Assembly: GCA_051530055.1 (NCBI GenBank)
Contig: CM121342.1
Span: 15,763,480 to 15,827,479 of the forward strand
DNA: 64,000 nucleotides
Reading direction: 5' to 3'
Origin: Neoechinorhynchus agilis
Lineage: Eukaryota; Animalia; Acanthocephala
Shown: positions 1 to 51,746 of the stretch, in pieces
How positions within the stretch are numbered: the first letter of the stretch is position 1
How the letters are laid out: each line of letters starts with the position of its first letter
Notes under the pieces: model-generated
What the model saw: only the letters and a program-made list of their open reading frames with translations
Told to the model about the DNA's origin: nothing
The model's database searches: none
Position numbers and translations under genes: made by a program

Positions 1-106
1 TTTAAAAAGTTCATTGAGTGTATTAATTTTATTGTTACAAAATTCATCGATCATCCCGAAAAACTTTTATGGTCATGAATTCCTTATCTCGAAATTTTAA
101 GTTGGT

Positions 107-26109: not shown

Positions 26110-27775
26110 ATGCTCCGTTCAAAGCATCTAACCGTCTCAAGTACGATATCGGACCTCAAACAATACGAAGAATACAGTCTCCGAGCAAAGCGAGTGGCAA
26201 TCTTACTTACTGTTCCCGTCAGACTGGAACCTCTGATGAACTACGGATTTCTCACATGTCTTTATGCCTTTTTGAAAACACTGTTACCAACAATGAGCTG
26301 CATTCTTAAACCGTCCAGCTCGGTTCGTCTCCGGGTATTAATTATGATAACCGCAGTTGCCGCACTCTTTCATCTGGATCTATCGCTTGTCTATCATTTA
26401 ATTCGAGCCCAGACCGCCCTCAAAATATATTTCTTATACAATGCCGTCGAAATGGCCGACCGAATCCTGGCACCTCTTGGTCAGGATGCACTCGAGCACT
26501 TTTGCTCTGATCCTCCTCCTTATTACAACATAAACCAACAACCATTAAGCCGTTTCCTTGAACGTCTTGAAGTGAAATTCCTGATCGCGGCAGTGATTAC
26601 AGTTGCTCAGTCATTTGTTTTCCTCCTTCAGGTTCTCACTTTGAACGTATAGATCGCTAGCACTCACAATGAGTCTCTTGTTAGTGCTCGCTTTCTCATA
26701 GCATTTAACTCCTTTAATCGAGCCTTATTTGGTCTTGTTGTCTCTAACAATTTCGTTGAGATTAAACAGGCCATTTTTAAACGATTCAATGAACAAGCAC
26801 ATCAAAGAGTGACTCTTTCCGATGCACGAGAGCGATTCCAATTCAGTCTAATTTTACTCATAATCGCAATTAGAAACTTGAGTCAATATGAATGCAAATA
26901 TCAATATCTCGAACAAATATTCCCCTATATCATTCTCATGCTTGCGACTGAGGTCTTTGTCGACTATGTCAAACATGTCTCAATGATCCGGTTCAATAAT
27001 CTAAAAACCGAGTTCTACTCAGAGCTACTAGATAAAATCAAACTCGACCTGCATTCGTCATATACAGGAAATACAAATAGGATTGAGAGCAATTGAACCA
27101 AATTTTCTCTTGCCTTCTTAGCAAGAAGTAAATTTTTAAATTTGCTTCCAATCACCTTCTATATTTCAATTAGCTTTCTACGAAAATCGCTTAATCTTCA
27201 TCATCCAAATTACTTTGTATGAAGTGAACTAAGGAAATAAAGGTTCACTTAATCTCGGAGCAGAAATCATTCACACCGCCGCTTTGGATCAATCAGCTGC
27301 CGTTATGGTGTAACGGCCTTCCCGTTTTTAAAAACTTCTATGAAGCTTTTGAAAAAAATTACTTTTTAAAGTCACAACCTTTTTGTAACTCGATAAATGG
27401 CGGATCAGGTCAACAGACTTTAAGCAACAATGCAAAATCAACAAAGTTTCGAATGGTCCACAAAATCGAAATTTGCACAAATCCAAGTCATGTGGAAGCT
27501 TGCTGTCTTTAAAAGAGCCATTACGATCAAACAATTCAAATGATTGGCGCTCTTCGGTAACTAAAGATCAGTGCGACATTATCTGTCGATATTTTGCATT
27601 TGCACCAATCCCCTGTGCAACAGTTTTCGTGGTTAATTTAAGTCAAATAGTAAGAGTTAATTCCTTTAATGGTCTCCTAAAAACCTGCCTGCTCATCGTG
27701 TCATTAGTTCTACTCAAGAATTTGATCGATAAGCTGGTGAGGATTTCGTGTGCACGGGTTCATAAGACCAAATAA
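26110..27775 (+). CDS. TAPT1: Transmembrane anterior posterior transformation protein 1 homolog
   Basis: VYHLIRAQTALKIYFLYN..DR....GQD, TLNV|AFNS..SNNFVEIKQAIFKRF, DARERFQ, EVFVDYVKH, and C-terminal FAFAPIP. Exon structure 27070-27470 is unresolved. Confidence 0.9.
26650..26700 (+). other. Non-canonical stem-loop intron in TAPT1 (51 nt)
   Basis: In-frame stops; removal restores TLNVAFNS; TA repeated at both ends; whole segment self-complementary. Confidence 0.75.
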
Positions 27776-27917
27776 ATTATTGGCACCTAGTTTTTTTGTG
27801 ATTTCCATATCGAAAAGGATAACAACGAAAAAAAGGCGAGATTTGCATTATCTCCGATTTTTTTGCATAAAAATGTGCTTAAAATCAGAAAAAAGAATGA
27901 TTCTTGAATCTCGTTTG

Positions 27918-28610
27918 TTACGACGAATTCATGCTCTTCTCTCTGGACTCGGTCCAAGCTTTGGCAATAGTTCTTTTCATCTCATCATCCCCTTCCTCGT
28001 ACATTTTCTTCATCATTTTCATGAGACCTTCCTGTGGATCCTGTTTTTCATCAACTGGATCAAATTTGGGCTTACGGCGTTCACTCGATTGTTTATCGGC
28101 CTCTGTAAGATATTCCCATTTTTTACTTTCACTCTTCGCCATACTAATCTGAACCACGTCTCCTTTGAGAACTTTAACGTTACTATCATCGCATTTAATC
28201 CTATGCAGTAGATTACGGATTTCAAGAACGTGATTGGCACCAGATAAACGTTCGATGACCAATTTGAATCCTCGCTCATTAAAATCACATTTGACCTGAT
28301 CGGTTCCCGCCAGTGAACTAACTCCTGTTATACCCGACGTTACCAGTAGTCGAATTCGATCATTCGTCTGATCCCATCCGTAGACCTTGATGATTTTATT
28401 GAAACAAGTATTGGAAGTCGATGATGAAGTTGTGGACCGTTTAGAACACGCTGATTGTGTCGATTGTTTTAAAAATCCGATTTGACTTTCTACTTGAAGA
28501 ATAAGTGATGACATCAGTTGTTTGACCGAACAGCGAGATGCCCGAGTGCTTAGAGCATTCAATTCCGCCAGATCCGCTTCAAGAGAAGAAAGCTGATCGC
28601 TCGGAGACAT
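27918..28610 (-). CDS. CACYBP: Calcyclin-binding protein / SIP, intronless
   Basis: IKVYGWDQT CS domain; SGS domain DPQEGLMKMMKKMYEEGDDEMKRTIAKAWTESR. Confidence 0.93.
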   Translation of the reverse strand: MSPSDQLSSLEADLAELNALSTRASRCSVKQLMSSLILQVESQIGFLKQSTQSACSKRSTTSSSTSNTCFNKIIKVYGWDQTNDRIRLLVTSGITGVSSLAGTDQVKCDFNERGFKLVIERLSGANHVLEIRNLLHRIKCDDSNVKVLKGDVVQISMAKSESKKWEYLTEADKQSSERRKPKFDPVDEKQDPQEGLMKMMKKMYEEGDDEMKRTIAKAWTESREKSMNSS

Positions 28611-28844
28611 TAAAGCAGCGCGAATTAACAACGCGAGAGGGATGGTCGTACGCGTACTTTATCGCTATTCTTTCGGAAATTACAATGACGCCATCCGTGA
28701 GGTGATCTATGCAACGTAATCACGTCCCATCGTTAAAAATCTATGACGAACGATTCATTGAGACCAGGATGCTAACTTCGCTAATATTTCAATTTTTTTA
28801 AATAATGGTAATTAAAACGTATTTTGTATCGATGTGTTTTGTAC

Positions 28845-28912
28845 TCCGGAAAGGCGGGACTCATCAGTGAGTTTCCTCCGCTCTTCAACGAGGTATTAAG
28901 TGTGATTTTAAC
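28845..28912 (-). repeat. Degenerate fragment of the hammerhead unit
   Basis: Minus strand GGAGGAAACTCACTGATGAGTCCCGCC; the other two strands are lost. Confidence 0.7.
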
Positions 28913-29698
28913 GCTTCCCCTCCTGACCGATGAAATGGGCAGACTTCAAAAAAATAAAACGTTATGGAATTGAGATATTTCGGACGAGGAAACCTCGTTC
29001 GGAACTTTTTTTAAGCAATTTACTACGTGAACCCCGAAAGATTTTCTATCGATATTTGTTCCTTTTGGTAGTTTTCGTCAATGCCGACGTTATCTACATT
29101 TGCCTTTCTTTGGTACTTCCCATATTTAAATTGACCGATTTCCGATATTTCGTCAATGCCGACGTTATCAACGTTTGCCTTTCTTTGGTAATTTCATCTG
29201 AAAAAATAATGAAAGGCTTTGATAATGTCGGAAGCTAAGAAAGTATCCTTTTAACCCGTCGAAGACAATAATCCAACGATTTAATGTTTCGTCGTTTTAA
29301 ACGGGGCAATGCTGCCAGCGTGATGGCGGCAGTCGAGGAAGGACAAAAGCTGGAATTCGGCGGGAGGTGGTGAGTGTGTTAATTGTCGCGAGATGAAGAT
29401 TGATTGAATACATTTTTTCGAGTTAAAAAAATTTCCTAACGTTGTTTATAAATATTTTGGAATCGTCGATTCATTTTCGAAATTCACGCAGAAATTCTGC
29501 TAGATAAACTTTGAATTGTCTTAACCTCAGAATGCTCAGATATTGGAAAAAGCGTGAAATCTACGTCGACGTTATCTAAAAGCTTTTTAGCTCCTTTTCC
29601 AACGCTCTAATGACGCCCTGAAAAGTGAAATTTATCGCTTTTCTATCTTTTTATCTCATGTGATTGGCGCTTCTTGTTTTCCTTAATCTGCAAACGTA

Positions 29699-32600
29699 CT
29701 TTCAATGTCGTCAAACACACGATTTAATGCCGTTTAACAAAATATAAAACATTTGAGATTTTTTAGGCTGTTCATTTTTTAATTAGCTCATTCACGGCAG
29801 TTTCGTTTGCATTGAATGAACAATCCATTCTCCGTTCAAAAATGCTCTAAATTCGTTTTAATGATTCAATGCCAAAAATGTAAATACCGAGTTTCTGTCT
29901 ACAAATGTACATCGTTAAATCAGTTTAGTAATAGTCTTTTTAAGTCCCACAATCTTCTTTCCTCAGTTGCACTTCATTTTTTGTACCGTTGAACAAATGT
30001 TACCAAGTCTAATGGGTTAAAGTATTGTTTATTTCTAAAATGTAACCACTAACAAAACTACCAACCAAACCCCAAAACCAAACCAACCCCTCCTTTCAAT
30101 GTCTCAAACACACATCAAGCGTTAACAAAATATAAAACATTTGAGTTTTTTAGGCTGTTCATTTTTTAATTAGCTCATTCACGCAGTTTCGTTTGCATTG
30201 AATGAACAATCCATTCTCCCTCAAAAATGCTCTAAATTCGTTTTAATGATTCAATGCCAAAAATGTAAATACCGAGTTTCTGTCTACAAATGTACATCGT
30301 TAAATCAGTTTAGTAATAGTCTTTTTAAGTCCCACAATCTTCTTTCCTCAGTTGCACTTCATTTTTTGTACCGTTGAACAAATGTTTTACCAAGTCTAAT
30401 GGGTTAAAGTATTGTTTTATTTTCTAAAATGTAACCACTAACAAAACTTGATTTTCGTTGCGTGATGGGATTCCGATTAAATTGCCCCGCTTTGTATAAT
30501 GAAATCCAGGAATCCAACCCGGCTTTCCGTCCTTTCAATGTCGTCAAACACACGATTCAATGCCGTTTAACAAAATATAAAACATTTGAGGGTTTTTTAG
30601 GCTGTTCATTTTTTAATTAGCTCATTCACGGCAGTTTCGTTTGCATTGAATGAACAATCCATTCTCCGCTCAAAAATGCTCTAAATTCGTTTTAATGATT
30701 CAATGTCAAAAATGTAAATAATGAGTTTCTGTCTAAATCAGTTTAGTAATATTCTTTTTAAGTCCCACAATCTTCTTTCCTCAGTTGCACTTCATTTTTT
30801 GTACCGTTGAACAAATGTTGGACCAAGTCTAATGGGTTAAAGTATTGTTTTATTTCTAAAATGTAACCACTAACAAAACTGGATTTTCGTTGCGTGATGG
30901 GATTCCGATTAAATTGCCCCGTTTTGTAAAATGAAATCCAGGAACCCAACCCGGCTTCCCGTCCTTTCAATGTCGTCAAACACACGATTCAATGCCGTTT
31001 AACAAAATATAAAACATTTGAGGTTTTTTTAGGCTGTTCATTTTTTAATTAGCTCATTCACGACAGTTTCGTTTTCATTTTGAACGAACAATCCATTCTC
31101 CGCTCAAAAATGCTCTAAATTCGTTTTATTGATTCAATGTCAAAAATGTAAATAGTGAGTTTCTGTCTAAATCAGTTTAGTAATATTCTTTTTAAGTCCC
31201 ACAATCTTCTTTCCTCAGTTGCACTTCATTTTTTGTACCGTTGAACTAATGTTCAACCAAGTCTAATGGGTTTAAGTATTGTTTTATTTTCTAAAATGTA
31301 ACCACTAACAAAACTGGATTTTCTTTGCGTGATGGAATTCCGATTAAATTGCCCCGTTTTGTGTAATGAAATCCAGGAACCCAACCCTGCTTCCCGTCCT
31401 TTCAATGTCGTCAAACACACGATTCAATGCCGTTTAACAAAATATAAAACATTTGAGGGTTTTTTAGGCTGTTCATTTTTTAATTAGCTCATTCACGGCA
31501 GTTTCGTTTGCATTGAATGAACAATCCATTCTCCGCTCAAAAATGCTCTAAATTCGTTTTAGATATTCAATGCCAAAAATGTATATACTGAGTTTCTGTC
31601 TAAATCAGTTTAGTAATATTCTTTTTAAGTCCCACAATCTTCTTTCCTCAGTTGCACTTCATTTTTTGTGCCTTGTACAAATGTTGGACCAAGTCTAATT
31701 GGTAAAAGTATTGTTTTATTTTCTAAAATGTAACCACTAACAAAACTGGATTTTCGTTGCGCCATAGGATTCCGATTAAATTGCCCCGTTTTGTGTAATG
31801 AAATCCAGGAATCCAACCCGGCTTCCCGTCCTTTCAATGTCGTCAAACACACGATTCAATGCCGTTTAACAAAATATAAAACATTTGAGGTTTTTTTAGG
31901 CTGTTCATTTTTTAATTAGCTCATTCACGGCAGTTTCGTTTGCATTGAATGAACAATCCATTCTCCGTTCAAAAATGCTCTAAATTCGTTTTAGTGATTC
32001 AATGTCAAAAATGTAAATACTGAGTTTCTGTCTACAAATGAACATCGTTAAATCAGTTTGGTAATATTCTTTTTAAGTCCCACAATCTTCTTCCCTCAGT
32101 TGCACTTCATTTTTTGTGCCTTGAACAAATGTTGGACCAAGTCTAATTGGTAAAAGTATTGTTTTATTTTCTAAAATGTAACCACTAACAAAACTGGATT
32201 TTCGTTGCGCCATAGGATTCCGATTAAATTGCCCCGTTTTGTGTAATGAAATCCAGGAACCCAACCCGGCTTCCCGTCCTTTCAATGTCGTCAAACACAC
32301 GATTCAATGCCGTTTAACAAAATATAAAACATTTGAGGGTTTTTTAGGCTGTTCATTTTTTAATTAGCTCATTCACGGCAGTTTCGTTTGCATTGAATGA
32401 ACAATCCATTCTCCGTTCAAAAATGCTCAAATTCGTTTTAAGATTCAATGCCAAAAATGTAAATACGAGTTTCTGTCTACAAATGACATCGTTAAATCAG
32501 TTTAGTAATATTCTTTTTAAGTCCCACAATCTTCTTTCCTCAGTTGCACTTCATTTTTTGTGCCTTGAACAAATGTTGGACCAAGTCTAATTGGTTAAAG

Positions 32601-35600
32601 TATTGTTTTATTTTCTAAAATGTAACCACTAACAAAACTGGATTTTCGTTGCGCCATAGGATTCCGATTAAATTGCCCCGTTTTGTGTAATGAAATCCAG
32701 GAACCCAACCCTGCTTCCCGTCCTTTCAATGTCGTCAAACACACATTCAATGCCGTTTAACAAAATATAAAACATTTGAGGGTTTTTTAGGCTGTTCATT
32801 TTTTAATTAGCTCATTCACGGCAGTTTCGTTTGCATTGAATGAACAATCCATTCTCCGTTCAAAAATGCTCTAAATTCGTTTTAGTGATTCAATGTCAAA
32901 AATGTAAATACTGAGTTTCTGTCTACAAATGAACATCGTTAAATCAGTTTGGTAATATTCTTTTTAAGTCCCACAATCTTCTTCCCTCAGTTGCACTTCA
33001 TTTTTTGTGCCTTGAACAAATGTTGGACCAAGTCTAATTGGTAAAAGTATTGTTTTATTTTCTAAAATGTAACCACTAACAAAACTGGATTTTCGTTGCG
33101 CCATAGGATTCCGATTAAATTGCCCCGTTTTGTGAGATGAAATCCAGGAATCCAACCCGGCTTCCCGTCCTTTCAATGTCGTCAAACACACGATTCAATG
33201 CCGTTTAACAAAATATAAAACATTTGAGATTTTTTTAGGCTGTTCATTTTTTAATTAGCTCATTCACGACAGTTTCGTTTGCATTGAATGAACAATCCAT
33301 TCTCCGCTCAAAAATGCTCTAAATTCGTTTTAGATATTCAATGCCAAAAATGTATATACTGAGTTTCTGTCTAAATCAGTTTAGTAATATTCTTTTTAAG
33401 TCCCACAATCTTCTTTCCTCAGTTGCACTTCATTTTTTGTGCCTTGTACAAATGTTGGACCAAGTCTAATTGGTAAAAGTATTGTTTTATTTTCTAAAAT
33501 GTAACCACTAACAAAACTGGATTTTCGTTGCGTGATGGGATTCCGATTAAATTGCCCCGTTTTGTATAATGAAATCCAGGAACCCAACCCTGCTTCCCGT
33601 CCTTTCAATGTCGTCAAACACACGATTCAATGCCGTTTAACAAAATATAAAACATTTGAGGGTTTTTTAGGCTGTTCATTTTTTAATTAGCTCATTCACG
33701 GCAGTTTCGTTTGCATTGAATGAACAATCCATTCTCCGTTCAAAAATGCTCTAAATTCGTTTTAGTGATTCAATGTCAAAAATGTAAATACTGAGTTTCT
33801 GTCTACAAATGAACATCGTTAAATCAGTTTGGTAATATTCTTTTTAAGTCCCACAATCTTCTTCCCTCAGTTGCACTTCATTTTTTGTGCCTTGAACAAA
33901 TGTTGGACCAAGTCTAATTGGTAAAAGTATTGTTTTATTTTCTAAAATGTAACCACTAACAAAACTGGATTTTCGTTGCGCCATAGGATTCCGATTAAAT
34001 TGCCCCGTTTTGTGAGATGAAATCCAGGAATCCAACCCGGCTTCCCGTCCTTTCAATGTCGTCAAACACACGATTCAATGCCGTTTAACAAAATATAAAA
34101 CATTTGAGGTTTTTTTAGGCTGTTCATTTTTTAATTAGCTCATTCACGGCAGTTTCGTTTGCATTGAATGAACAATCCATTCTCCGCTCAAAAATGCTCT
34201 AAATTCGTTTTAGATATTCAATGCCAAAAATGTATGTACTGAGTTTCTGTCTAAATCAGTTTAGTAATATTCTTTTTAAGTCCCACAATCTTCTTTCCTC
34301 AGTTGCACTTCATTTTTTGTGCCTTGTACAAATGTTGGACCAAGTCTAATTGGTTAAAGTATTGTTTTATTTTCAAAATGTAACCACTAACAAACTGATT
34401 TTCGTTGCGTGATGGGATTCCGATTAAATTGCCCCGTTTTGTATAATGAAATCCAGGAACCCAACCCTGCTTCCCGTCCTTTCAATGTCGTCAAACACAC
34501 GATTCAATGCCGTTTAACAAAATATAAAACATTTGAGGGTTTTTTAGGCTGTTCATTTTTTAATTAGCTCATTCACGGCAGTTTCGTTTGCATTGAATGA
34601 ACAATCCATTCTCCGTTCAAAAATGCTCTAAATTCGTTTTAGTGATTCAATGTCAAAAATGTAAATACTGAGTTTCTGTCTACAAATGAACATCGTTAAA
34701 TCAGTTTGGTAATATTCTTTTTAAGTCCCACAATCTTCTTCCCTCAGTTGCACTTCATTTTTTGTGCCTTGAACAAATGTTGGACCAAGTCTAATTGGTA
34801 AAAGTATTGTTTTATTTTCTAAAATGTAACCACTAACAAAACTGGATTTTCGTTGCGCCATAGGATTCCGATTAAATTGCCCCGTTTTGTGTAATGAAAT
34901 CCAGGAATCCAACCCGGCTTCCCGTCCTTTCAATGTCGTCAAACACACGATTCAATGCCGTTTAACAAAATATAAAACATTTGAGATTTTTTTAGGCTGT
35001 TCATTTTTTAATTAGCTCATTCACGACAGTTTCGTTTGCATTGAATGAACAATCCATTCTCCGCTCAAAAATGCTCTTAATTCGTTTTAGATATTCAATG
35101 CCAAAAATGTATGTACTGAGTTTCTGTCTAAATCAGTTTAGTAATATTCCTTTTGAGTCCCACAATCTTCTTTCCTCAGTTGCACTTCATTTTTTGTGCC
35201 TTGTACAAATGTTGGACCAAGTCTAATTGGTTAAAGTATTGTTTTATTTTCTAAAATGTAACCACTAACAAAACTGGATTTTCGTTGCGTGATGGGATTC
35301 CGATTAAATTGCCCCGTTTTGTGTAATGAAATCCAGGAACCCAACCCTGCTTCCCGTCCTTTCAATGTCGTCAAACACACGATTCAATGCCGTTTAACAA
35401 AATATAAAACATTTGAGGGTTTTTTAGGCTGTTCATTTTTTAATTAGCTCATTCACGGCAGTTTCGTTTGCATTGAATGAACAATCCATTCTCCGTTCAA
35501 AAATGCTCTAAATTCGTTTTAGTGATTCAATGTCAAAAATGTAAATACTGAGTTTCTGTCTACAAATGAACATCGTTAAATCAGTTTGGTAATATTCTTT

Positions 35601-38600
35601 TTAAGTCCCACAATCTTCTTCCCTCAGTTGCACTTCATTTTTTGTGCCTTGAACAAATGTTGGACCAAGTCTAATTGGTAAAAGTATTGTTTTATTTTCT
35701 AAAATGTAACCACTAACAAAACTGGATTTTCGTTGCGCCATAGGATTCCGATTAAATTGCCCCGTTTTGTGAGATGAAATCCAGGAATCCAACCCGGCTT
35801 CCCGTCCTTTCAATGTCGTCAAACACACGATTCAATGCCGTTTAACAAAATATAAAACATTTGAGATTTTTTTAGGCTGTTCATTTTTTAATTAGCTCAT
35901 TCACGACAGTTTCGTTTGCATTGAATGAACAATCCATTCTCCGCTCAAAAATGCTCTTAATTCGTTTTAGATATTCAATGCCAAAAATGTATGTACTGAG
36001 TTTCTGTCTAAATCAGTTTAGTAATATTCTTTTTAAGTCCCACAATCTTCTTTCCTCAGTTGCACTTCATTTTTTGTGCCTTGTACAAATGTTGGACCAA
36101 GTCTAATTGGTAAAAGTATTGTTTTATTTTCTAAAATGTAACCACTAACAAAACTGGATTTTCGTTGCGTCATGGGATTCCGATTAAATTGCCCCGTTTT
36201 GTATAATGAAATCCAGGAACCCAACCCTGCTTCCCGTCCTTTCAATGTCGTCAAACACACGATTCAATGCCGTTTAACAAAATATAAAACATTTGAGGGT
36301 TTTTTAGGCTGTTCATTTTTTAATTAGCTCATTCACGGCAGTTTCGTTTGCATTGAATGAACAATCCATTCTCCGTTCAAAAATGCTCTAAATTCGTTTT
36401 AGTGATTCAATGTCAAAAATGTAAATACTGAGTTTCTGTCTACAAATGAACATCGTTAAATCAGTTTGGTAATATTCTTTTTAAGTCCCACAATCTTCTT
36501 CCCTCAGTTGCACTTCATTTTTTGTGCCTTGAACAAATGTTGGACCAAGTCTAATTGGTAAAAGTATTGTTTTATTTTCTAAAATGTAACCACTAACAAA
36601 ACTGGATTTTCGTTGCGCCATAGGATTCCGATTAAATTGCCCCGTTTTGTGTAATGAAATCCAGGAACTCAACCCGGATTCCCGTCCTTTCAATGTCGTC
36701 AAACACACGATTCAATGCCGTTTAACAAAATATAAAACATTTGAGGGTTTTTTAGGCTGTTCATTTTTTAATTAGCTCATTCACGGCAGTTTCGTTTGCA
36801 TTGAATGAACAATCCATTCTCCGCTCAAAAATGCTCTAAATTCGTTTTAATGATTCAATGCCAAAAATGTAAATACTGAGTTTCTGTCTACAAATGACAT
36901 CGTTAAATCAGTTTAGTGATATTCCTTTTGAGTCCCACAATCTTCTTTCCTCAGTTGCACTTCATTTCTTGTGCCTTGAACAAATGTTGGACCAAGTCTA
37001 ATTGGTAAAAGTATTGTTTTATTTTCTAAAATGTAACCACTAACAAAACTGGATTTTCGTTGCGTCATGGGATTCCGATTAAATTGCCCCGTTTTGTGTA
37101 ATGAAATCCAGGAACCCAACCCTGCTTCCCGTCCTTTCAATGTCGTCAAACACACGATTCAATGCCGTTTAACAAAATATAAAACATTTGAGGGTTTTTT
37201 AGGCTGTTCATTTTTTAATTAGCTCATTCACGGCAGTTTCGTTTGCATTGAATGAACAATCCATTCTCCGTTCAAAAATGCTCTAAATTCGTTTTAGTGA
37301 TTCAATGTCAAAAATGTAAATACTGAGTTTCTGTCTACAAATGAACATCGTTAAATCAGTTTGGTAATATTCTTTTAAGTCCCACCTTCTTCCTCAGTTG
37401 CACTTCATTTTTTGTGCCTTGAACAAATGTTGGACCAAGTCTAATAGGTTAAAGTATTGTTTTATTTTCTAAATGTAACCACTAACAAAACTGGTTTTCG
37501 TTGCATGGATTCTTAAATTGCCCCGTTTTGTAATGAAATCCAGGAACTCAACCCGGATTCCCGTCCTTTCAATGTCGTCAAAAACACGATTCAATGCCGT
37601 TTAACAAAATATAAAACATTTGAGGGTTTTTTAGGCTGTTCATTTTTTAATTAGCTCATTCACGGCAGTTTCGTTTGCATTGAATGAACAATCCATTCTC
37701 CGCTCAAAAATGCTCTAAATTCGTTTTAATGATTCAATGCCAAAAATGTAAATACTGAGTTTCTGTCTACAAATGTACATCGTTAAATCAGTTTAGTGAT
37801 ATCTTTGAGTCCCACAATCTTCTTCTCAGTTGCACTTCATTTCTTGTGCCTTGTACAAATGTTGGACCAAGTCTAATTGGTAAAAGTATTGTTTTATTTT
37901 CTAAAATGTAACCACTAACAAAACTGGATTTTCGTTGCGCCATAGGATTCCGATTAAATTGCCCCGTTTTGTATAATGAAATCCAGGAACCCAACCCTGC
38001 TTCCCGTCCTTTCAATGTCGTCAAACACACGATTCAATGCCGTTTAACAAAATATAAAACATTTGAGGGTTTTTTAGGCTGTTCATTTTTTAATTAGCTC
38101 ATTCACGGCAGTTTCGTTTGCATTGAATGAACAACCATTCTCCGTTCAAAAATGCTCTAAATTCGTTTTAGTGATTCAACAAAAATGTAAATACTGAGTT
38201 TCTGTCTACAAATGAACATCGTTAAATCAGTTTGGTAATATTCTTTTTAAGTCCCACAATCTTCTTCCCTCAGTTGCACTTCATTTTTTGTGCCTTGAAC
38301 AAATGTTGGACCAAGTCTAATTGGTAAAAGTATTGTTTTATTTTCTAAAATGTAACCACTAACAAAACTGGATTTTCGTTGCGCCATAGGATTCCGATTA
38401 AATTGCCCCGTTTTGTGTAATGAAATCCAGGAATCCAACCCGGCTTCCCGTCCTTTCAATGTCGTCAAACACACGATTCAATGCCGTTTAACAAAATATA
38501 AAACATTTGAGGTTTTTTAGGCTGTTCATTTTTTAATTAGCTCATTCACGACAGTTTCGTTTGCATTGAATGAACAATCCATTCTCCGCTCAAAAATGCT

Positions 38601-41600: not shown

Positions 41601-42902
41601 TGCCGTTTAACAAAATATAAAACATTTGAGGGTTTTTTAGGCTGTTCATTTTTTAATTAGCTCATTCACGGCAGTTAAGTTTGCATTGAATGAACAATCC
41701 ATTCTGCCCTAAAAAATGCTCTAAATTCGTTTTAATGATTCAATGCCAAAAATGTAAATACCGAGTTTCTGTCTACAAATGTACATCGTTAAATCAGTTT
41801 AGTGATATTCCTTTTGAGTCCCACAATCTTCTTTCCTCAGTTGCACTTCATTTCTTGTGCCTTGAACAAATGTTGGACCAAATCTAATGGGTTAAAGTAT
41901 TGTTTTATTTTCTAAAATGTAACCACTAACAAAACTGGATTTTCGTTGCGTGATGGGATTCCGATTAAATTGCCCCGTTTTGTATAATGAAATCCAGGAA
42001 CCCAACCCTGCTTCCCGTCCTTTCAATGTCGTCAAACACACGATTCAATGCCGTTTAACAAAATATAAAACATTTGAGGGTTTTTTAGGCTGTTCATTTT
42101 TTAATTAGCTCATTCACGGCGGTTTCGTTTGCATTGAATGAACAATCCATTCTCCGTTCAAAAATGCTCTAAATTCGTTTTAGTGATTCAATGTCAAAAA
42201 TGTAAATACTGAGTTTCTGTCTACAAATGAACATCGTTAAATCAGTTTGGTAATATTCTTTTTAAGTCCCACAATCTTCTTTTTTCAGTTGCACTTCATT
42301 TTTTGTACCGTTGAACAAATGTTGGACCAAGTCTAATACGTTAAAGTATTGTTTTATTTTCTAAAATGTAACCACTAACAAAACTGGATTTTCGTTGCGT
42401 GATGGGATTCCGATTAAATTGCCCCGTTTTGTGTAATGAAATCCAGGAACCCAACCCGGCTTCCCGTCCTTTCAATGTCGTCAAACGCACGATTCAATGC
42501 CGTTTAACAAAATATAAAACATTTGAGGGTTTTTAGGCTGTTCATTTTTTAATTAGCTCATTCACGGCAGTTAAGTTTGCATTGAATGAACAATCCATTC
42601 TCCGTTCAAAAATGCTCTAAATTCGTTTTAGTGATTCAATGTCAAAAATGTAAATACCGAGTTTCTGTCTACAAATGAACATCGTTAAATCAGTTTGGTA
42701 ATATTCTTTTTAAGTCCCACAATCTTCTTTCCTCAGTTGCACTTCATTTTTTGTGCCTTGAACAAATGTTGGACCAAATCTAATGGGTTAAAGTATTGTT
42801 TTATTTTCTAAAATGTAACCACCAACAAAACTGGATTTTCGTTGCGCCATAGGATTCCGATTAAATTGCCGCGTCTTGTGTAATGAAATCCAGAAACCCA
42901 AC
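29699..42902. repeat. Satellite array, ~30 monomers of 432 or 448 bp with partial dimeric higher-order structure
   Basis: Spacing of the repeated ORF copies is 432, 448 and 880 bp; monomers differ by a 16 bp indel (ACAAATGAACATCGTT) and linked substitutions. Confidence 0.97.
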
Positions 42903-43508: not shown

Positions 43509-44767
43509 ATGAGTTCAAATGACAGCGATGGCGAAAGAGCGAGTCACGGCGTCCTAGTTGCAAGACGCGTAAGTTTCCAAGACGCTAGTTTCAAACAACC
43601 CATTGTCCCTGAAATCCTTGACTATTTGGGCCATCTTCCTTGTAGGTTAACAAAAGGAAGCTGCTTAAGGCCAGGCTGCTGCTTAAGTCGGACTCATTGA
43701 TGATTGACAATGAAGCCATTAAATATGTTTCTCAATGTTGGCATTTAACAACCCCAATCTTACTTATACTTCAGAACTCGTTCATGACATTGGTCGTTCG
43801 GCATATGAAGCTGAGAAAGTCGTACTCGTTTATGAACACAACAGCTGTCTTTTGGACAGAAATTATAAAATTGAAACTGTCATTGATCCTCATAGCACTC
43901 AACCATTCATCTTTCAGTGCTTTTCAGCAAACTCTTAGGCAAAAACTGTTTTCAGCCAATTTTACTACTCTTAAATCGTTCCTTCCTGCACTTCTCTACT
44001 CCTTTCAAAACAATCTCCTCTACATTGCAATGGGAAACCTCGACGCAGCTACTTTTCAAGTCTCATATCAGCTTAAAATACTCACCACTGCTGCCTGCAT
44101 GTGGTTGATTTTGGGAAAACGGCTATCTTTTACGCAATGGATTACCTGATACAATTAATGATCATCGGAAGGGCTACTAATCTTGGGATGATCGTTGGCT
44201 TTCTTATCAGATTCACTCGTTTTGATGTTCGTCGGCGTTGTCTTAGTTCAAACAAATTCAGTGCAATCAAACCAAAAGCACACCAATCCTCTTGTGGGAT
44301 TGAGTTCCACTCTCGCCGCTTGTGTCCTATGCAGCTTCGCGGGTGTGTATACTGAGAAAATCCTAAAGGACGATGAACTCGATACTTGGACTAGAAATGC
44401 TCATCTTGCCTTCTTCAGTGCAATTGTGTCCGGTTTTACAATGCTCATCTATGACGGAACCAATATAATCAAATTAGGACTTCTTAGCGGGTACGGTCCT
44501 CTCACATGGGCGGCGATACTGGCGCAAGCCTTTGGCGGACTGATTGTGGCTCTTGTAATTAAGAACCATGATAATATCATTAAAGCATTCGCTAATGTTT
44601 CATCGATCATTTTGTCGACTGTGCTCGCTGCCATGTATCTTGATACTTACATCACTCGTCAATTGGTAGCTGGGATGACTATTGTGCTCGTCAATATTCT
44701 CGTATATTTATACCACAAAGCTGTTTCTAAAAAAATCAAATCCATTGTAAAAACTTGTACATCGTGA
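43509..44767 (+). CDS. SLC35A-family nucleotide-sugar transporter (UDP-Gal/UDP-GlcNAc type)
   Basis: KYVS..LQN, PALLYSFQNNLLY, LDAATFQVSYQLKILTTA, FAGVYTEKILK, GGLIVALVIK.HDNIIK.F. A possible 29 nt GT-AG intron (43646-43674) links the upstream ATG; otherwise the start is 43700. Confidence 0.88.
44145..44213 (+). other. Non-canonical stem-loop intron in the SLC35A gene (69 nt; boundary may shift by 1-2 nt)
   Basis: Four in-frame stops; removal gives QWI(T/S)LVLMF; CTGATA/TATCAG and AATGATCATC/GATGATCGTT arms. Confidence 0.72.
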
Positions 44768-44979
44768 TGAAGTTTCAGAACTTGTTGCGATAAATCCTCG
44801 TTTGATCACACAACTTTTACGGACTGTCAAAACTAATAACCACTTGTAGTCGTGGATATATTACTAACTTCACAAATATTCGAAATCTTTTCATGCATCA
44901 ACAAGTGATTGTCAAAATAATACTTCGAAACGCGATCCTAACAAGGCAATTTTTAATGACCTCATTGTGCAATCTGATT

Positions 44980-46210
44980 CCTCGGTTGACGAGTATTTTA
45001 GCTTTATTTTATTTGCAAAAAGATCCATATTTATAGGACAACACAAGCAAAACCGAATACGCAATGCTAAACATTTGATTTTCTCCCTCTCACCGAATAC
45101 CTTTATAAGATTTTCTACTGACAAGCAGTGCGCCTTTAAACCCTACCACTACAAATTTGACTCCGTTTTATTCCCCTTTTCATACGAGAACAACACTCGC
45201 ATTCCCAATTCCATTCACCCTCTCTCAACCTTGCACCTCCTTCTACTTCTGCTCCTATTTCCATACTGTCCAATCTTCTCGAATATTATGACCCGAAATG
45301 AACCGGAGACAAGACCCAACCTCACAAACGTCCCTGCAAACAATACCAAGGAGCTTTCACACCCATCCGGACCAGTAATTTACTCCAAAATAAACAACCA
45401 CATTCAGGAAATATATCATATGGTTTGAGTGTTCACGAAGAGCCAGAGGTACATGGTTCTTCTACTTTGAACAATGAAATGTGTTATTATTTTAAGTTGA
45501 AAATTAGCTCTAATGATTAAAAGGTCACTCTCCGTTAACTTGTTAAGTTTTCTAACGCGGCTAATTCAATCGTGAGAATATCGGGTAGGGAGATGTCCGT
45601 TCTGGTGGGGGTTGGTGGTTACGGTTTGCAGGATAGCTTGTGAGGTTAGTCTCTCCTCAGGTTCATTTCAGATTATGATATCCGAGAAGATTGGGCAGCA
45701 TGGACCATTCAACGAAGGTGTGCAAATGTACAGACAAAAAGTGATTATTTTCAACAATGAAGCTAAAATCGTGTAATTCTACCCCCAGTTTGCCTTTTTA
45801 AACTTTGATATCTGTAGTCCAGCTTTATATATAAACATGTTTTGTTGATTGTGGTTGGTTGGTCGATTTTGGTTGGTTAATTTGTAGTTGTTGTGTTCCG
45901 TTCTTTCCTCCGAATCAATTCGCATTGGAAGGATTGAGCAGCGGGGAAGAAAGAGCGGAGTTAGAGATTTGTGCGAGGAACTGATGGATGGGAAATGTTG
46001 GGGCGACGAGTGTTGTAAGTGTGAGTAAAAGAGAATGAAGGCGCTTTGAATGCTTTTGAAAGATTAGAGAGAGGTGTTTTTCTAAGGGCAGGAGTTCGGA
46101 GGAGCAGATTAGAGTGCACCTCTAGTGAAATGTATTAAGTTTTTGGAAACGGCAAGAAGAAAAATTGCGGAAGGTTGGATATGCGCGTAGGTGATCGTTG
46201 GTAGGATGGT
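44980..46210. mobile_element. LINE 3' remnants in opposite orientations (plus ~44980-45460; minus ~45590-45730 and ~45930-46210)
   Basis: Similarity to 8950-9340 and to each other. Confidence 0.6.
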
Positions 46211-47101
46211 GGACATATAAAAGTACTTACGGTCATTGAATGAGAATCCAAGGAATCGGAGGCGTTTAAGAAGATAGAGTTTAGTGGGCCCTTCTCAAAT
46301 TAGGCTTTCGGTTATCGGAAAAATCTCGTATCCGAATGGTGTCCGACCGAATTATTTCGGATAAACGACGTTCTACTGTAACTGGTAATCGTCTTCCTCG
46401 TTTCCCGAAAAGAATATAAAAACACCGGTTCTAGAAAGGGCTGTTTTTAGATTTAAAAAGAGAATCGATGATGATTGTGCATTAAATTAACGGAAATCGA
46501 TGCACCTGATTACTTGATCGAGGATTTTCCTCATTTACAAATTTCAGATCCTTAAGTGTCAGTAAAAAAGAATTTATTAACACCTTTACAACCCTCCGTC
46601 AGAAGAAAAGCATTCGTCGATAATCCACAAAAAATTTCGCTCTTGATCTGCACGGAAGAAATAAAATGACGTTAGTTCGCTAAAATATAAAAGAATGATC
46701 TTCAGCGATATTTGAAAATAAAATTGGGATGTTTTTAGAGGCTCAGTATGTTATATTTGTTATGATTTCAATATGCTCGAATTTTTGTTTCGTGTAGGGA
46801 CCGTAATTGCACTTAAAAAATCCCTTTTATTGATTTATCTGCGCGTATGATATTAAAATTTGGCATTTTTCCCGCACTTCAATTTTAAGAAACGATCAAA
46901 AGCGGATCTGATTTGGTTTTTGCTTTTCCTGAAATCGGTTGTTATTTCTCATAAAATGAAAGCCGCTGGTTTGTGTTTTAATAAAATGCCTACACATTCT
47001 CTAAAAATCGCAGCATTCTGATTGGCTTAAAATTGAGATGAGGCGCAGTTAGATAATTAGAGTTCTTAAGAGCACAACGTGAGTGACACGGTCTTTTTAA
47101 G

Positions 47102-49318
47102 ATGTTGAATAAAGGCGATAAAGGACAAAGGTCCAAGAAGTTCAAAAAAGGCGCATTTCAATGCATGGGACTTCATCCTGCACTTTTGAAAGGTATTTTC
47201 GCTTGTGGATACAAGCAACCAACGCCCATCCAACGTGAAATGATACCCATTGCTCTGACTGGCTCTGATGTGGTTGCAATGGCACGAACGGGGAGTGGCA
47301 AGACTGCAGCTTTTCTTATCCCGATACTGAACCAACTGCTTTTGAACACTGATGATCTGAAGCACGAAATAGCGGTGACCCTGAAACCATTCGATAACAT
47401 TCGTGCACTGATCCTGAGTCCAACAAGAGAAATTGCGATTCAAACATTTAAGTTTCTGAAGAGGATTGGCAAGTACGTGTTGGGATCAAAGAATGGAAAA
47501 CTAAGTAGCGCATTAATAACTGGTGGTTCGGAAAGTCTTGACAGTCAATTCGATCTTTTAACGAATAATTGTCCACAAGTTTTAGTGGCTACGATCGGTC
47601 GGCTGCTTCATCTTTCCGTAGAGATGGAAGTCAAGAAGTTCCTTAATGTCAAATTTCTTGTCTTGGACGAAGCAGATCGCCTTTTTGAGCAAGCACGAGA
47701 GTCCAAATCAGACGAGGCTCTTGTACAGATTCATGAAATTCTTAAACGACTTCCTAGTGAAGGACGACAAAATATGCTTGTGTCTGCAACGCTTCCGAGA
47801 CAACTTATACAGTTCGCAAACGCTGGTCTTAACTCACCAGTAGTAGTTCGTTTAATTCATGTATTCGTGATCGGCTCGACGAAATCGGAAAGCAAGCCAT
47901 TACCGAAGGACATCCTGTTCTCCAACGTTTAGTTTTCACTCCTGAATTATTTATATGGGCTTTCGCGTTTCTTTGATTCATAAAATCAACATTCGATTAT
48001 CTAAATAATATCACGATTACATGAAAAAGACTCTGATATGCGATTAAGCCCATACTTATCAGACGTTCATTATATTATGTGCCGCCAAAACTATCAGTCG
48101 AAACTTTCGATTCTGGCTAATATGCTTGCCGATGGCCGTTACGTTCGACGACCGTGTGCCATATTTGTTGCCACCAAACACGACGTCGAGCTACTTTGCT
48201 CTATGATTGATCAACATTTAAATTTAGCCAAATGTGCCGGTCTTTACGGAAAGATGGACCAGGTGGCGCGCGAAATGGCCTTAAATAGATTCATAAATCT
48301 AAAAGCGGATTGTCTTGTTGTTACAGACGTTGCTGCGCGAGGGATAGATATTCCAGCATTGGACTGTGTTGTAAATTTCAACTTTCCTGCTACCGGAAAA
48401 TTATTTATTCATAGAATTGGCCGTGTAGCTAGAAGACCATCAGTTCACGGCTCAACAGCAATTTGTTTGGTCGCGGTAGACGAGATTCCCCGTCTTTTGG
48501 ACGTACATCTTTTGCTTGGATTTGAGATTGAAGACGATGACCGATTTTCACTTGAGCCTGGTTATTCGAATGCCCAATACGATGAAATTATTGGTCGGAT
48601 ATTAAAAGATCAGTTAAGTGAGGAGATTAAGCGAGCTTCAAATGGGTATTGTGCTTATTTGAGATCTTTGAAGCCTCCTTCAAGTCAATCAGTAAAGACC
48701 TTTAAAGAACAAAAGGAAAGGTATCAGGCTTTGTGTGCTACCGAGGGCAGTATCCGATTAGTTGATAAATGGAGAAATGCGAAAAAGTCCAAGGGGCTAA
48801 AGAATCCAATCGATAAAGGGATCAATGTAAAAAATTCTGACAAGAAAGCAAGTTTTAAAGATCTGGACTACTTTATTCCCTATAGACAAAGTGATTGTGA
48901 CCGAGAAGAGTTTCTCTCTCTTTCTAAGAACAATCTAAACGACGCTGTGGATGACACTGTTTGTGATGAGGGTGCGATGGAGATACAAAGGAATCGAAAA
49001 CCGAAGTTAAGGTGGGATAGAAAGAGGAAGAAGTACGTTAGTGTGAATATAGAAGAGCGGCAGTCTGTTGCAAAATTTAAGCGAGGACGATACAAGTCGT
49101 GGTTAGAAAAATCGAAGCATATTGATCGCATTGGTACTACATCCGATCAACAGGCCATGGATCAAGGCTTCAAAAGTCACGGTAAGGTTCGCCACAGAAA
49201 GAACCGCGAGCTTAAAAGTGTCCAACAAGTCCTGAAAAGGCGGCGGATTACGGGGGTGAAACAGAAATTCGAGAAATCGAGGAGAAGCTTGCGAAGTAAA
49301 CGGAAGGGCGTAAAGTGA
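47102..49318 (+). CDS. DDX54: DEAD-box RNA helicase DDX54/Dbp10
   Basis: FQCMGL..GY..PTPIQR, ARTGSGKT, PTRE, DEADRLFE, SAT, TDVAARGIDIP, HRIGRVAR, and C-terminal WDRKRKKYV. Confidence 0.93.
47855..48028 (+). other. Non-canonical stem-loop intron in DDX54 (174 nt)
   Basis: 15/16 bp terminal inverted repeat; removal restores VRL|DSDMRLS, matching the conserved RLDxxxx(L/V)S spacing. Confidence 0.78.
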
Positions 49319-49859
49319 TAAGAGAATTTGTTTTGTGGTTATGTAGGAAGATTGGTCATACAAGACGTTCAAGATATTATTATGCAAATTCCAAAGAACC
49401 TATTTGTTGAATATTATCGACTCTGCCGTTTTTATCTTTTTTACAATATTAATCCGGTTTAGACCATTGCGAGGTATCAGTAGATGGTTAGAATAATTGT
49501 TTTGATTTCACCTGAGGCGTTTGTCGCAAACCGCCCGTTCGGATTTTGACGATTTATTTTTTCATTGTAGATGTCCAACGTATACTTGCGTACGACCGGT
49601 CGGATTTTCGGAGCAATGGAATAGAAGTCCTCTCTCATTCCTGAGCTCTTAGATTTGGACAAGTTAAGCAGAAGGATTTCGCACTTCCTCGGATCCTCAA
49701 GAACTACACCATGTTCGCTATATAGTATGGCATCATCAACTTACCAAGCGTTAAAGCTCGATTCTAGGCGGTTGGTAACTTTGTCTATGACAAGTGCGAA
49801 TCCTGTTAAGGGGAAGAAATGGTGTTTACGCAAACAACACGAAGCGCAACAAATGGGAC

Positions 49860-50325
49860 GAACTTTCCGTTTCGATGTCGCTACTTTAACACACACTTCA
49901 CATGCTCACGTGCCTTTGTAGATTCCTGAATAAGCTGCAAGACGGCGAAAGATCAAGAATAAAGATTTTTCTCATACAACAGCCCACCAAAGTGTCAATT
50001 TAAAAACAACATTCAATCATGCGGCTAGAAATCAAGTAGTATGTTACAAGATTATGAACATGCGGTTGGGCAAACCGATTTTTGCTACTGTCACAAACTA
50101 CATAGCGATCTAAGATAGGTTGAAGGGTCAAGAGCAGCGAATTCCGCTCGTAAAGCGATTTTTTCAAAAAATATTGAGGGGACTTCGTTTTCAATATCTC
50201 GAAATCCATTTACGAGAAACGTAGTGCTTCTTTAGTACACACACTTCACATCTCCACTCGCCTTTGTAAGATCTTGAAGAAGTTGTAAGACGACGAAAGC
50301 TCGGAAATAAAGATTTTTCCTTCTC
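49860..50325 (+). mobile_element. Two decayed Penelope-like 3' ends with minimal hammerhead-like motifs
   Basis: Related blocks ~49890-49975 and ~50237-50320: (C/T)TGAA(T/G)A-stem-GAAA-palindrome-AATAAA. Confidence 0.5.
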
Positions 50326-50339
50326 TTTATTATTAAAAC

Positions 50340-50443
50340 ATTTTCCAATGTTAACTTAAAAACAAAACTTCAGCCTTTTCCAAGTGTTAATTTAAAAACA
50401 AAACTTCAGCCTTTTCCAAGTGTTAATTTAAAAACAAAACTTG
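50340..50443. repeat. 35 bp tandem repeat, ~3 copies
   Basis: CAGCCTTTTCCAAGTGTTAATTTAAAAACAAAACTT-like unit. Confidence 0.85.
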
Positions 50444-51116
50444 ATTTATCGGAACCAAACGGTGGGTTCTGATTCAATGGAAACAAAATCGTTCTACCCG
50501 AATTAGGCTTTTTTATTTACGGATTCATCAAATGATAATCACGCTGCAGTGCAAGCTGTTAACCGACTTCTGGAGCAAGGATACTCACATGGTGACATAA
50601 AGGGTAGTTTTAACAGAAATGTTTAAATTTGGAATGAATGTTAACGAGATTGAAACTAAATTTGCAGTGATGGTTAGAGTTATATTTTGCCAAGTAAAAG
50701 AAATTCATTCGAGCATTTTTTGTGAAATCTATGAAAAGTAATTGAAATAATGTTTAAAAACTTTCAAGCAAATTCAGCATTCAATGCAATCCGATTTTAT
50801 GGTTTTGTGAATGCTAGGACTAAGATTATTTCGAAGCATCGATACTTGCAGAATTGATCTTTCAGCATCGTTAGGAATGTTACCATATTAAAGCCTGCAT
50901 CTGATATTGTTAATTTAAATACCGACCATTGAATTTCAAAAACCTTACTTAAATTTTTTAACCATTCTGTGCGTGGCTCAGAAATGCAGCAAAAAAACAC
51001 GTCGAGTTCAAGAGTAGATTCCCAACTCACTACACGTTTTCCATTGCTCATCACTGAAGCGTTCATTGCACATTTAAAGATCTTTGCAACATTTCTACGT
51101 GCTTTGATAAAACGAA

Positions 51117-51746
51117 ATGGGTGCCCGTCAAAATGCGCAGAAGGAACCAACCGAAAAGTTGATGAAGATGCTTAGTCAATCAACGAAATGCAGCGAAAAA
51201 AACGTTTGGGAAAGCTATCACCGATTTAAAACTTATGCTCCAAGTGGGATTATGGACAAGGAAACCTTCATCCACAGATTTCAAACAAAGTACCCACACG
51301 CAAATGTAAAACACATAGCCGATGTCGTTTTTCGATATTTCGATACTGACAATTCCGGTGGAATCTCATTTGTGGAATATTTCCTACCAAATGCATTTAG
51401 AGCAGCGGATGTTTATTTAGAATGGATCAAGGAAAAATAGACTGCCCGCTGACTTATATATCAAGCAAATCCAGTGGAAAGGGCAAAAATTCTGTTCGAC
51501 ATATTTGATGCCGATGATAACAATGTCGTGACCGAAAAGGAACTAAGGAAAGCAATCACAGGATTAGTCGAATTGAGGGGTAATCATAACATGTCCGATG
51601 CAGATGTGTCAAGAATTGCAGCTCGGTTTACCAGCGAAATGGATTGTGACGGAAATCGCGAAATATCAAAAGACGAGTTTGTTTATGCCCTCAGTACAAA
51701 TCAGAACCTGAGGAAGTTCCTTGAGTTCAATTATGGGAATGCTTGA
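51117..51746 (+). CDS. Neuronal calcium sensor-like EF-hand protein
   Basis: MG N-terminus (myristoylation), YHRF...APSG, DTDNSGGISFVE, DADDNNVVTEKE, DCDGNREISKDE. Confidence 0.85.
51400..51456 (+). other. Non-canonical stem-loop intron in the EF-hand gene (57 nt)
   Basis: In-frame TAG and TGA; TA repeated at both ends; CAGCGG/CCGCTG stem; removal gives the 20-residue EF2-EF3 spacing of NCS proteins. Confidence 0.68.

Follow-up and report, generated by a model that had tools for sequence, protein, structure and literature searches.

The window analysed here is a 64,000-nucleotide stretch of the genome of the acanthocephalan Neoechinorhynchus agilis (GCA_051530055.1, contig CM121342.1, positions 15,763,480 to 15,827,479 of the forward strand; all coordinates below count from its first letter). 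Among its genes are TAPT1, an SLC35A-type nucleotide-sugar transporter gene (SLC35), DDX54/Dbp10 and an NCS/KChIP-like EF-hand gene, each of which is interrupted within its coding sequence by a short segment, here called an insert, that carries in-frame stop codons (Table 1). An initial annotation, made from the sequence alone, had picked out these four segments, and all were found at the coordinates and with the lengths that it gave (51, 69, 174 and 57 nt, every one a multiple of three). We attach no mechanistic reading to this shared property of the lengths, which may stem from the way the segments were picked. The exons on either side are long, open and otherwise intact. TAA, TAG and TGA are all present in frame across the four inserts, and as all three also end genes, stop-codon reassignment is ruled out.

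In all four genes, conserved residues and colinearity with homologues are regained only by exact deletion of a multiple of three nucleotides. The predicted junctions after such removal read TTGAACGTA/GCATTTAAC in TAPT1, CAATGGATTA/CACTCGTTTTG in SLC35, GTAGTTCGTTTA/GACTCTGATATG in DDX54 and AATGCATTTA/TATATCAAGC in the EF-hand gene; those of SLC35 and the EF-hand gene are set by homology to about 1-3 nt, while those of TAPT1 and DDX54 are exact save for sliding over a repeated TA or A. Without its 69 nt, SLC35 aligns gap-free across the junction (QWIT/LVLM) with the mouse CMP-sialic acid transporter 6oh4 and matches the Nuc_sug_transp profile in one piece, from position 11 to 314 of 315, and without its 57 nt the EF-hand protein aligns gap-free to calsenilin and KChIP4. 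Removal of 174 nt from DDX54 restores VVVRL/DSDM, in which R, L and D are invariant in eight sequences (ours and seven homologues). Removal of 51 nt from TAPT1 restores LNV/AFNS, where LNVAFNS is found in eight of nine homologues and the A in nine of 10 sequences, and turns the DUF747 domain into one continuous stretch.

Conventional splice sites do not achieve this. We enumerated all in-frame, stop-free GT/GC..AG pairs within about 90 nt of each insert and found 39, 6, 22 and 10 of them (TAPT1, SLC35, DDX54 and EF-hand, in that order), every one of which drops or adds conserved residues; the full enumeration thereby bears out the initial claim that no GT-AG pair keeps the conserved motif. The least bad of these options, 47850-48029 in DDX54 (180 nt), comes at the cost of RLD. 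For TAPT1, a profile built from 69 TAPT1 homologues scored the exact 51-nt deletion at 276.0 bits and the same deletion shifted by +1 at 273.2 bits, as against 264.4 bits for a 27-nt GT-AG intron (26647-26673), 261.4 bits for the unspliced sequence and 252.4 bits for the gene model P0241. This model (window 26452-27093) joins the TAPT1 exons over a 21-nt GT..AG gap at 26632-26652, and in doing so loses the conserved VLTLNV and translates 16 residues of the insert. It is an annotation artefact that arises from a non-canonical intron.

Table 1. Inserts, interrupted genes and ordinary introns of the window (z, fold z-score; a slash marks a junction)
Feature	Position	Strand	Details
TAPT1 (DUF747), hairpin insert	26650-26700	+	51 nt, i.e. 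49-nt element plus TA copy; cut may slide to 26648-26698; in-frame TAG; flanking TA..TA duplication exact
SLC35A-type nucleotide-sugar transporter, hairpin insert	44145-44213	+	69 nt; 4 in-frame stops; flanking copies TA..TT
DDX54/Dbp10, hairpin insert	47855-48028	+	174 nt; 3 in-frame stops; flanking copies TA..AA; slides to 47854-48027
NCS/KChIP-like EF-hand gene, hairpin insert	51400-51456	+	57 nt; in-frame TAG and TGA; slides to 51397-51453; TTA..TTA duplication exact
TAPT1 coding exons	26110-26649, 26701-27093	+	DUF747 match, E = 1.1e-63
SLC35A-type gene	43700-44767	+	exons 43700-44144 and 44214-44767 (149 + 184 codons)
DDX54 gene	47102-49318	+	exons 47102-47854 and 48029-49318 (251 + 429 codons); insert is the sole interruption
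EF-hand (NCS/KChIP-like) gene	51117-51746	+	exons 51117-51399 and 51457-51746
DENN intron	312-363	+	52 nt, GTACGA..TATCAG; joins LLSYCFI/SDHPHFDKF; z +0.67
DENN intron	673-716	+	44 nt, GTAACA..AAACAG; z -1.19
MRPL13 intron	7007-7048	+	42 nt, GTAAGC..CGTTAG; z +1.58
MRPS31 intron	24488-24543	+	56 nt, GTGAGA..TGGAAG; z +0.79

The ordinary introns of the same window provide a contrast class. The four GT-AG introns measure 42-56 nt, are rich in AT overall and in T towards the 3' end, and show neither a terminal stem nor excess folding. The comparison supports the presence of two intron-like classes in one animal genome, the one unstructured with GT-AG borders, the other bounded by a hairpin and without them. 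The initial annotation had proposed a structure-guided splicing route, or a family of introners derived from miniature inverted-repeat transposable elements (MITEs), that operates alongside ordinary GT-AG introns; the coexistence stands and the transposon anatomy fits (see below), but the notion of a family is not supported, as the four inserts share no sequence and none has a second copy in the window. No small nuclear RNA (Rfam) or splicing-factor gene was found in the 64 kb.

Hairpins, termini and insertion sites

Each of the inserts folds so that a helix closes its ends, with minimum free energies of -15.7 (TAPT1), -20.5 (SLC35), -39.5 (DDX54) and -16.0 kcal/mol (EF-hand) and z-scores, relative to dinucleotide shuffles, of -2.68, -3.16, -2.60 and -2.85, respectively. 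In three of the four, the terminal stem is perfect, spans 6 bp or more and lies at (5',3') offsets from the insert ends of (1,3) in SLC35, (1,3) in DDX54 and (3,5) in the EF-hand gene, such that the 3' offset exceeds the 5' offset by exactly 2 nt and position +4 pairs with -6 in all three; random window segments of the same lengths had any such stem, over 35 offset pairs, in about 1% of cases. The SLC35 insert has an outer stem CTGATA/TATCAG and an inner stem of 15 nt, the DDX54 insert a terminal inverted repeat of 16 nt (94%; 47856-71 and 48010-25), and the EF-hand insert a stem CAGCGG/CCGCTG at +4..+9 and -11..-6. That all four segments fold back, and that +4 pairs with -6 to leave a 2-nt 3' overhang in three genes with TAPT1 one base off, had been proposed beforehand and is confirmed by these energies, z-scores and offsets. 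The hairpins matched no Rfam family or miRNA precursor, even at E <= 1. The bulge-helix-bulge motif of the tRNA endonuclease is not formed in extended folds either, the SLC35 site being bulged on one strand only.

The ends of the inserts have no dinucleotide in common. They read TA..TA (TAPT1), CC..TT (SLC35), AT..AA (DDX54) and GA..TA (EF-hand), or AG..AG, CT..TC, TT..AG and AG..AT when shifted by +1, just as the initial annotation had listed them. The first six bases are TAGATC, CCTGAT, ATTCAT and GAGCAG, respectively; AC is found at no 3' end, and the homology-defined 3' ends have no consistent polypyrimidine tract or AG. The first exon base past the insert is G, C, G or T, and thus a purine in two of the four.

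By comparison, the insertion sites are uniform. The upstream exons end in GTA, TTA, TTA and TTA, so that TA precedes the insert in all four (empty sites NNTA^), as had been suggested from the observation that each upstream exon can end in TA. This dinucleotide makes up 5.4% of those in coding exons, and its occurrence at four of four sites has a chance probability of about 4e-4 even when 2-4 equivalent cuts per site are allowed for. If the second TA copy is set apart, elements of 49, 67, 172 and 55 nt remain, each with ends that mirror one another as inverted repeats. On the left, TA is found in every case, while the right copy reads TA in TAPT1, TT in SLC35, AA in DDX54 and TA in the EF-hand gene. 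In other words, the target-site duplications of TAPT1 and of the EF-hand gene are exact, while those of SLC35 and DDX54 each differ at one base. If an intron comprises the element and, behind it, the second copy of a 2-bp duplication, the distance between helix and intron end is necessarily 2 nt greater on its 3' side than on its 5' side, and the 2-nt register is thus explained by the duplication alone, with no need for an enzyme that measures from the helix. Taken together, the TA sites, terminal inverted repeats and 2-bp duplication are a set of data that a transposon origin fits, as far as anatomy can tell.

Two further hairpins lie near these genes. An intergenic hairpin of 80 nt at 25285-25364, whose 5' arm is AAGCAGCGGAATTTTT, has AGCAGCGGA in common with the EF-hand insert, which carries it at its 5' end (GAGCAGCGGATG); the match is 9 nt long and is expected by chance about once per window. 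The second is a candidate fifth element in the 3' part of TAPT1, at 27094-27151 (+), which is 58 nt long, not a multiple of three, and begins at an in-frame TGA where homologues have the SRRMGF region. Its stem (27095-27105 with 27138-27148, 11 nt, 91%) has a z-score of -2.56, but the minimum-free-energy structure leaves the ends unclosed. Excision of the 58 nt would lead into a frame reading SPSIFQLAFYENRLIFIIQITLYEVN followed by a stop, and profile and BLASTP comparisons fit excision and read-through alike. This segment may be a fifth element; otherwise read-through, an error in sequencing or truncation of the gene may account for it. A scan of the window for further pairs of open reading frames (ORFs) bridged by a stem-ended segment returned 10,703 unspecific matches and was not used.

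Proposed origin and removal of the inserts

We consider it likely that the inserts are transposon-derived nonconventional introns, which are excised from pre-mRNA by cuts at the base of their terminal helix. On this model, palindromic, MITE-like remnants of DNA transposons would have inserted at TA in coding exons, and each present-day insert would comprise a symmetric element, bounded by terminal inverted repeats, and a single TA left by the 2-bp duplication. Removing the element together with one TA copy would rebuild the ancestral uninterrupted codons exactly. The cuts would fall at positions other than GT/AG near the helix foot, at a distance from it of 1-3 nt (5') and 3-5 nt (3'), and such hairpin introns would coexist in N. 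agilis with the unstructured introns of 42-56 nt. The inserts are old, to judge by the partial decay of their duplications and inverted repeats, and the genes are under selection, to judge by their long and intact flanking ORFs; old inserts within selected, otherwise intact genes that are essential and conserved imply in turn that they are removed before translation. The transposon origin, the removal at the level of RNA and the kind of enzyme responsible are all inferred. The last would be, with roughly equal probability, a spliceosome with relaxed site requirements, as in Fritillaria, or a helix-guided activity of the kind suspected in Euglena.

Several observations weigh against this interpretation. 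Only four cases are at hand, and they were chosen by a reader who sought continuation in the same frame; lengths that are all multiples of three are not needed for precise excision and would arise with a chance of 1/81 in an unbiased sample. Two of the four duplications are imperfect, and the TAPT1 stem is interrupted (19 nt, 79% complementary) and lies one base out of register. In blastn searches against the 64-kb window each insert matched only itself, and the four have no sequence in common, in keeping with the initial remark that internal sequences are not shared. The lack of second copies is only weak negative evidence, since the window represents 0.14% of the genome, but together with the lack of shared sequence it makes the case for a transposon a purely anatomical one. 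Finally, the collections searched held no proteins derived from N. agilis RNA (the self-cluster had one member).

An alternative that retains excision from RNA is that a helix-recognising endonuclease cuts at a fixed distance from the stem base, leaving a 2-nt 3' overhang of the RNase III type, and that an RNA ligase then joins the exons without any spliceosome. Such a system would correspond, in an animal, to the machinery proposed for the nonconventional introns of Euglena. The register of (1,3), (1,3) and (3,5) does match the N3...N5 spacing of Euglena introns, the EF-hand insert has CAG and CTG at +4..6 and -8..-6, and the inserts lack GT, shared termini and a consistent 3' signal; moreover, the canonical introns are normal, so the spliceosome is not visibly degenerate. 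Against this, the 2-bp target-site duplication explains the register equally well, TAPT1 breaks it, no bulge-helix-bulge motif is formed, and the only animal precedent, Fritillaria, uses the U2 spliceosome. We therefore regard such an endonuclease and ligase as unlikely. The broader proposition, that a bilaterian possesses a second, Euglena-type excision pathway in which the terminal helix rather than GT/AG sets the cuts, independently of U1/U2AF or of the spliceosome altogether, seems to us quite unlikely. If it were true, it is through that pathway that hairpin transposons would have been able to spread into coding exons of essential acanthocephalan genes.

Two other explanations place the matter at the level of DNA, and we judge both to be very improbable. 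In the first, the inserts are excised from the DNA of some or all somatic nuclei, as are the TA-bounded internal eliminated sequences (IESs) of ciliates, and the assembly represents the unexcised form. Paramecium IESs are of similar size, have inverted termini and lie in coding sequence, TA is found at all four sites here and at both boundaries in two, and the source DNA came from whole worms and pools. However, SLC35 (TT) and DDX54 (AA) lack the right-boundary TA that excision of the ciliate type needs, k-mer completeness is 96% with a single consensus form, and programmed elimination of DNA has not, to our knowledge, been reported for Acanthocephala. In the second, nothing is removed at all, and the assembled gene copies are broken by artefacts of assembly or by transposon insertions that are recent or polymorphic. 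In favour of this reading are the hybrid assembly, in which short and long reads came from about 50 pooled worms and from single females, and its low BUSCO completeness (47%). Yet four of about 12 recognisable genes in 25 kb are affected, DDX54 among them, with ORFs that are otherwise intact; the decayed duplications and inverted repeats point to age; and each insert is unique in sequence, unlike the products of collapse or foldback artefacts.

Least probable of all is that nearby GT-AG or GC-AG sites such as those described above for DDX54 and TAPT1 are used and the proteins are simply divergent, for although in-frame, stop-free pairs exist at every site and P0241 employs one of them, the options for SLC35 and the EF-hand gene cost at least 14-16 conserved residues, DDX54 loses its invariant RLD, the TAPT1 alternatives score 12-24 bits lower, the sites themselves are poor (GTTTAA, no pyrimidine tract) next to the confirmed GTAAGC, GTGAGA, GTAACA and GTACGA with their T-rich 3' ends, introns of 21 or 27 nt would be far shorter than the 42-56 nt of the window, and the hairpins would be left unexplained.

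Genomic background and implications

The genome of N. agilis (Eoacanthocephala, Syndermata) is very compact and intron-poor, and most ancestral introns have been lost from it. The published assembly is Hi-C-scaffolded and spans 46.2 Mb in three major scaffolds with 38.81% GC, a value that agrees with that of the window. Within the window, uninterrupted single ORFs encode LARS1 (1168 aa, 20484-23987), a leucine-rich repeat protein (662 aa, 9594-11579), CacyBP (27921-28658) and HYPK (52117-52434), and tight same-strand neighbours are LARS1, MRPS31 and TAPT1 on the one hand and SLC35 and DDX54 on the other. Between the genes lie six long palindromes or foldbacks (18967-19101, 19591-20150, 45260-45704, 52530-52629, 52984-53104 and 63540-63727) of 100-560 nt, with arms 80-93% complementary and all mutually different in sequence; the 560-nt palindrome ends in CAGTGG...CCACTG, which resembles the inverted repeats of Tc1/mariner elements. 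Six such structures in one window suggest that hairpin-shaped insertions are common in this genome.

Other repeats are of different kinds. A tandem array at 30087-42902 comprises 29 copies of a 448-bp unit (93% matches) with strongly skewed strand composition; most units hold a 75-aa ORF with a GTG start on the minus strand, without Pfam or Rfam match. A second array at 56671-59814 has 9.6 copies of a 328-bp unit (97% matches), each with a 75-aa plus-strand ORF (NIKNSLKVDRLIVFLGNIAHRYGHG...) that has no Pfam match. Remains of retroelements occupy parts of 3300-8600 and 14731-15975; they include an endonuclease ORF of the long interspersed nuclear element type (5248-6342, minus strand), a reverse transcriptase fragment (8223-8600, plus strand) and a Penelope-like ORF with reverse transcriptase and GIY-YIG domains (14731-15975, minus strand), for which a protein search found no paralogues. 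A G-rich stretch surrounds MRPL13, with a GC skew of up to +0.47.

An empty site could be compared at the TAPT1 position only. The nearest relative of the N. agilis protein is that of Pomphorhynchus laevis (P0242): the two are mutual nearest neighbours with 40% identity, as against 27-37% to others, and share lineage-specific motifs, a grouping that speaks against a larvacean source for the window. In P. laevis (GCA_012934845.2, WNNJ02001749.1) TAPT1 is a single ORF of 432 aa with no insert at this position, from which it follows that the TAPT1 insert is lineage-specific. The neighbouring diphthamide-synthesis gene in P. laevis takes up more than 8 kb for a product of 390 aa, indicating that the two acanthocephalan genomes differ greatly in compactness. 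The 21-kb P. laevis locus holds only two genes and was otherwise uninformative. For LARS1 and DDX54 the only homologues found were distant animal ones, with 45-50% identity.

The literature we searched contained no report of non-canonical, nonconventional or introner introns in Acanthocephala, rotifers or Syndermata. The word 'intron' is absent from the genome papers of N. agilis and P. laevis and from a 2025 paper on gene loss, and the Seison paper treats introns as a length measure only. Public RNA-seq data for N. agilis comprise 74 libraries (PRJNA1223661), with Trinity contigs available from Zenodo (10.5281/zenodo.17199078).

Should transcripts confirm the predicted junctions, Acanthocephala would be the second animal lineage, and the first among protostomes, with abundant hairpin-bounded non-GT-AG introns, to which about half of the introns in the window would belong. 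They would offer a tractable case in which to study how a transposon is converted into an intron and how splice sites are chosen without GT/AG. There are practical consequences as well, as standard gene finders and splice-aware mappers presume GT-AG borders, and the TAPT1 model P0241 is already mis-spliced. By our own reasoning, claims of massive gene loss in this clade, which are partly based on BUSCO-type scores, may be inflated by unrecognised introns.

Comparison with known systems

To date, transposon-like unconventional introns are known from just a few protists and a single lineage of tunicates. The inserts of N. agilis resemble the introns of Amoebophrya, Euglena and Fritillaria, yet they carry the defining sequence signature of none of these systems. 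Two further classes were considered and rejected: U12-type (AT-AC) introns, because the ATATCC consensus and the AC end are absent from all four inserts, and mirtrons, which would suit the overhang geometry of three inserts but not their termini, which are not GT-AG, nor the absence of an Rfam miRNA match.

Among DNA elements, Stowaway and Tc1/mariner MITEs offer a parallel in their insertion at TA, their size range (49-172 nt for the elements here), terminal inverted repeats, lack of coding capacity and high hairpin potential. In contrast to such MITEs, the termini differ among the four inserts, none has an end of the CAGT or CTCC type right beside the TA, and there are no copies in the window. 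Paramecium IESs are likewise short and TA-associated, have inverted termini, interrupt coding sequence and need exact removal, but two of our inserts (SLC35 and DDX54) miss the right-boundary TA, and the ciliate process acts on DNA and is tied to a nuclear dimorphism that animals lack.

The comparisons with Fritillaria and Euglena had already been drawn in the initial annotation, the latter on account of the +4..6 / -8..-6 register, and both proved apt. Introns of Fritillaria borealis are MITE-derived, mostly AG/AC and AG/AT with YAY triplets, and are removed by the U2 spliceosome, less than 10% of them being GT-AG (Henriet et al., 2019; Soo et al., 2026, PMC13326754). N. agilis, like this species, is an animal whose compact genome has shed the majority of its ancestral introns, and its inserts share the terminal inverted repeats and target-site duplications, the composition of the intron as element plus 3' duplication copy and, for TAPT1, a lineage-specific position. 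On the other hand, none of the four has in frame a YAY before the 5' site together with YAY as its last three bases. The AG start typical of Fritillaria is obtained only for TAPT1 and the EF-hand gene, after a shift of +1/-1, whereupon the 3' ends become TAG or CTT and the conserved Ala of TAPT1 is lost. At least four of the eight introns here are GT-AG as opposed to less than 10%, the host is a protostome (Syndermata) rather than a tunicate, and removal by the spliceosome has been demonstrated in Fritillaria while the inserts of N. agilis are seen in genomic DNA alone.

Nonconventional introns of Euglena follow the pattern 5'-N3CDG...CH'GN5-6/R (Nomura et al., 2025, PMC12501133; review PMC11282704). 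As in Euglena, the borders of the inserts are variable and not GT-AG, conventional introns co-occur, and an end-joining helix stands in the register +4:-6, +5:-7, +6:-8 in three of the four, with TAPT1 out by one; the EF-hand insert even carries CAG...CTG with N3 and N5 spacers. The CDG/CH'G motif is, however, missing from the other three (GAT/ATC, CAT/ATG, none), the first exon base is a purine in just two, and the lineages are unrelated.

In Amoebophrya more than 60% of introns are non-canonical and share no dinucleotides, and a subset has inverted repeats of 8-20 nt and boundary direct repeats of 3-5 nt (Farhat et al., 2021, PMC7789003). The corresponding values in N. agilis are inverted repeats of 16 nt (94%) in DDX54 and 19 nt (79%) in TAPT1, with perfect ones of 6 nt in the other two genes, and direct repeats of 3, 2, 1 and 1 nt. 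Differences from Amoebophrya include the length of the repeat in N. agilis, which is 2 (to 3) nt and centred on TA, the two stems of just 6 bp, and the host, an animal rather than an alveolate; in addition, the elements of Amoebophrya have been validated by RNA-seq and fall partly into families, whereas ours have been read from the genome and have no repeat copy in 64 kb. Nevertheless, this is the system closest in anatomy: there too (i) terminal dinucleotides are not shared, (ii) inverted repeats at the ends form a hairpin that joins the exon borders, (iii) short direct repeats lie over the exon/intron boundaries, (iv) no transposase is encoded inside, (v) canonical introns coexist and (vi) the host is a fast-evolving parasite with a reduced genome. 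If the inserts of N. agilis are introns of this kind, they would have arisen independently of those in Fritillaria and in convergence with two protist groups, one of which is also parasitic.

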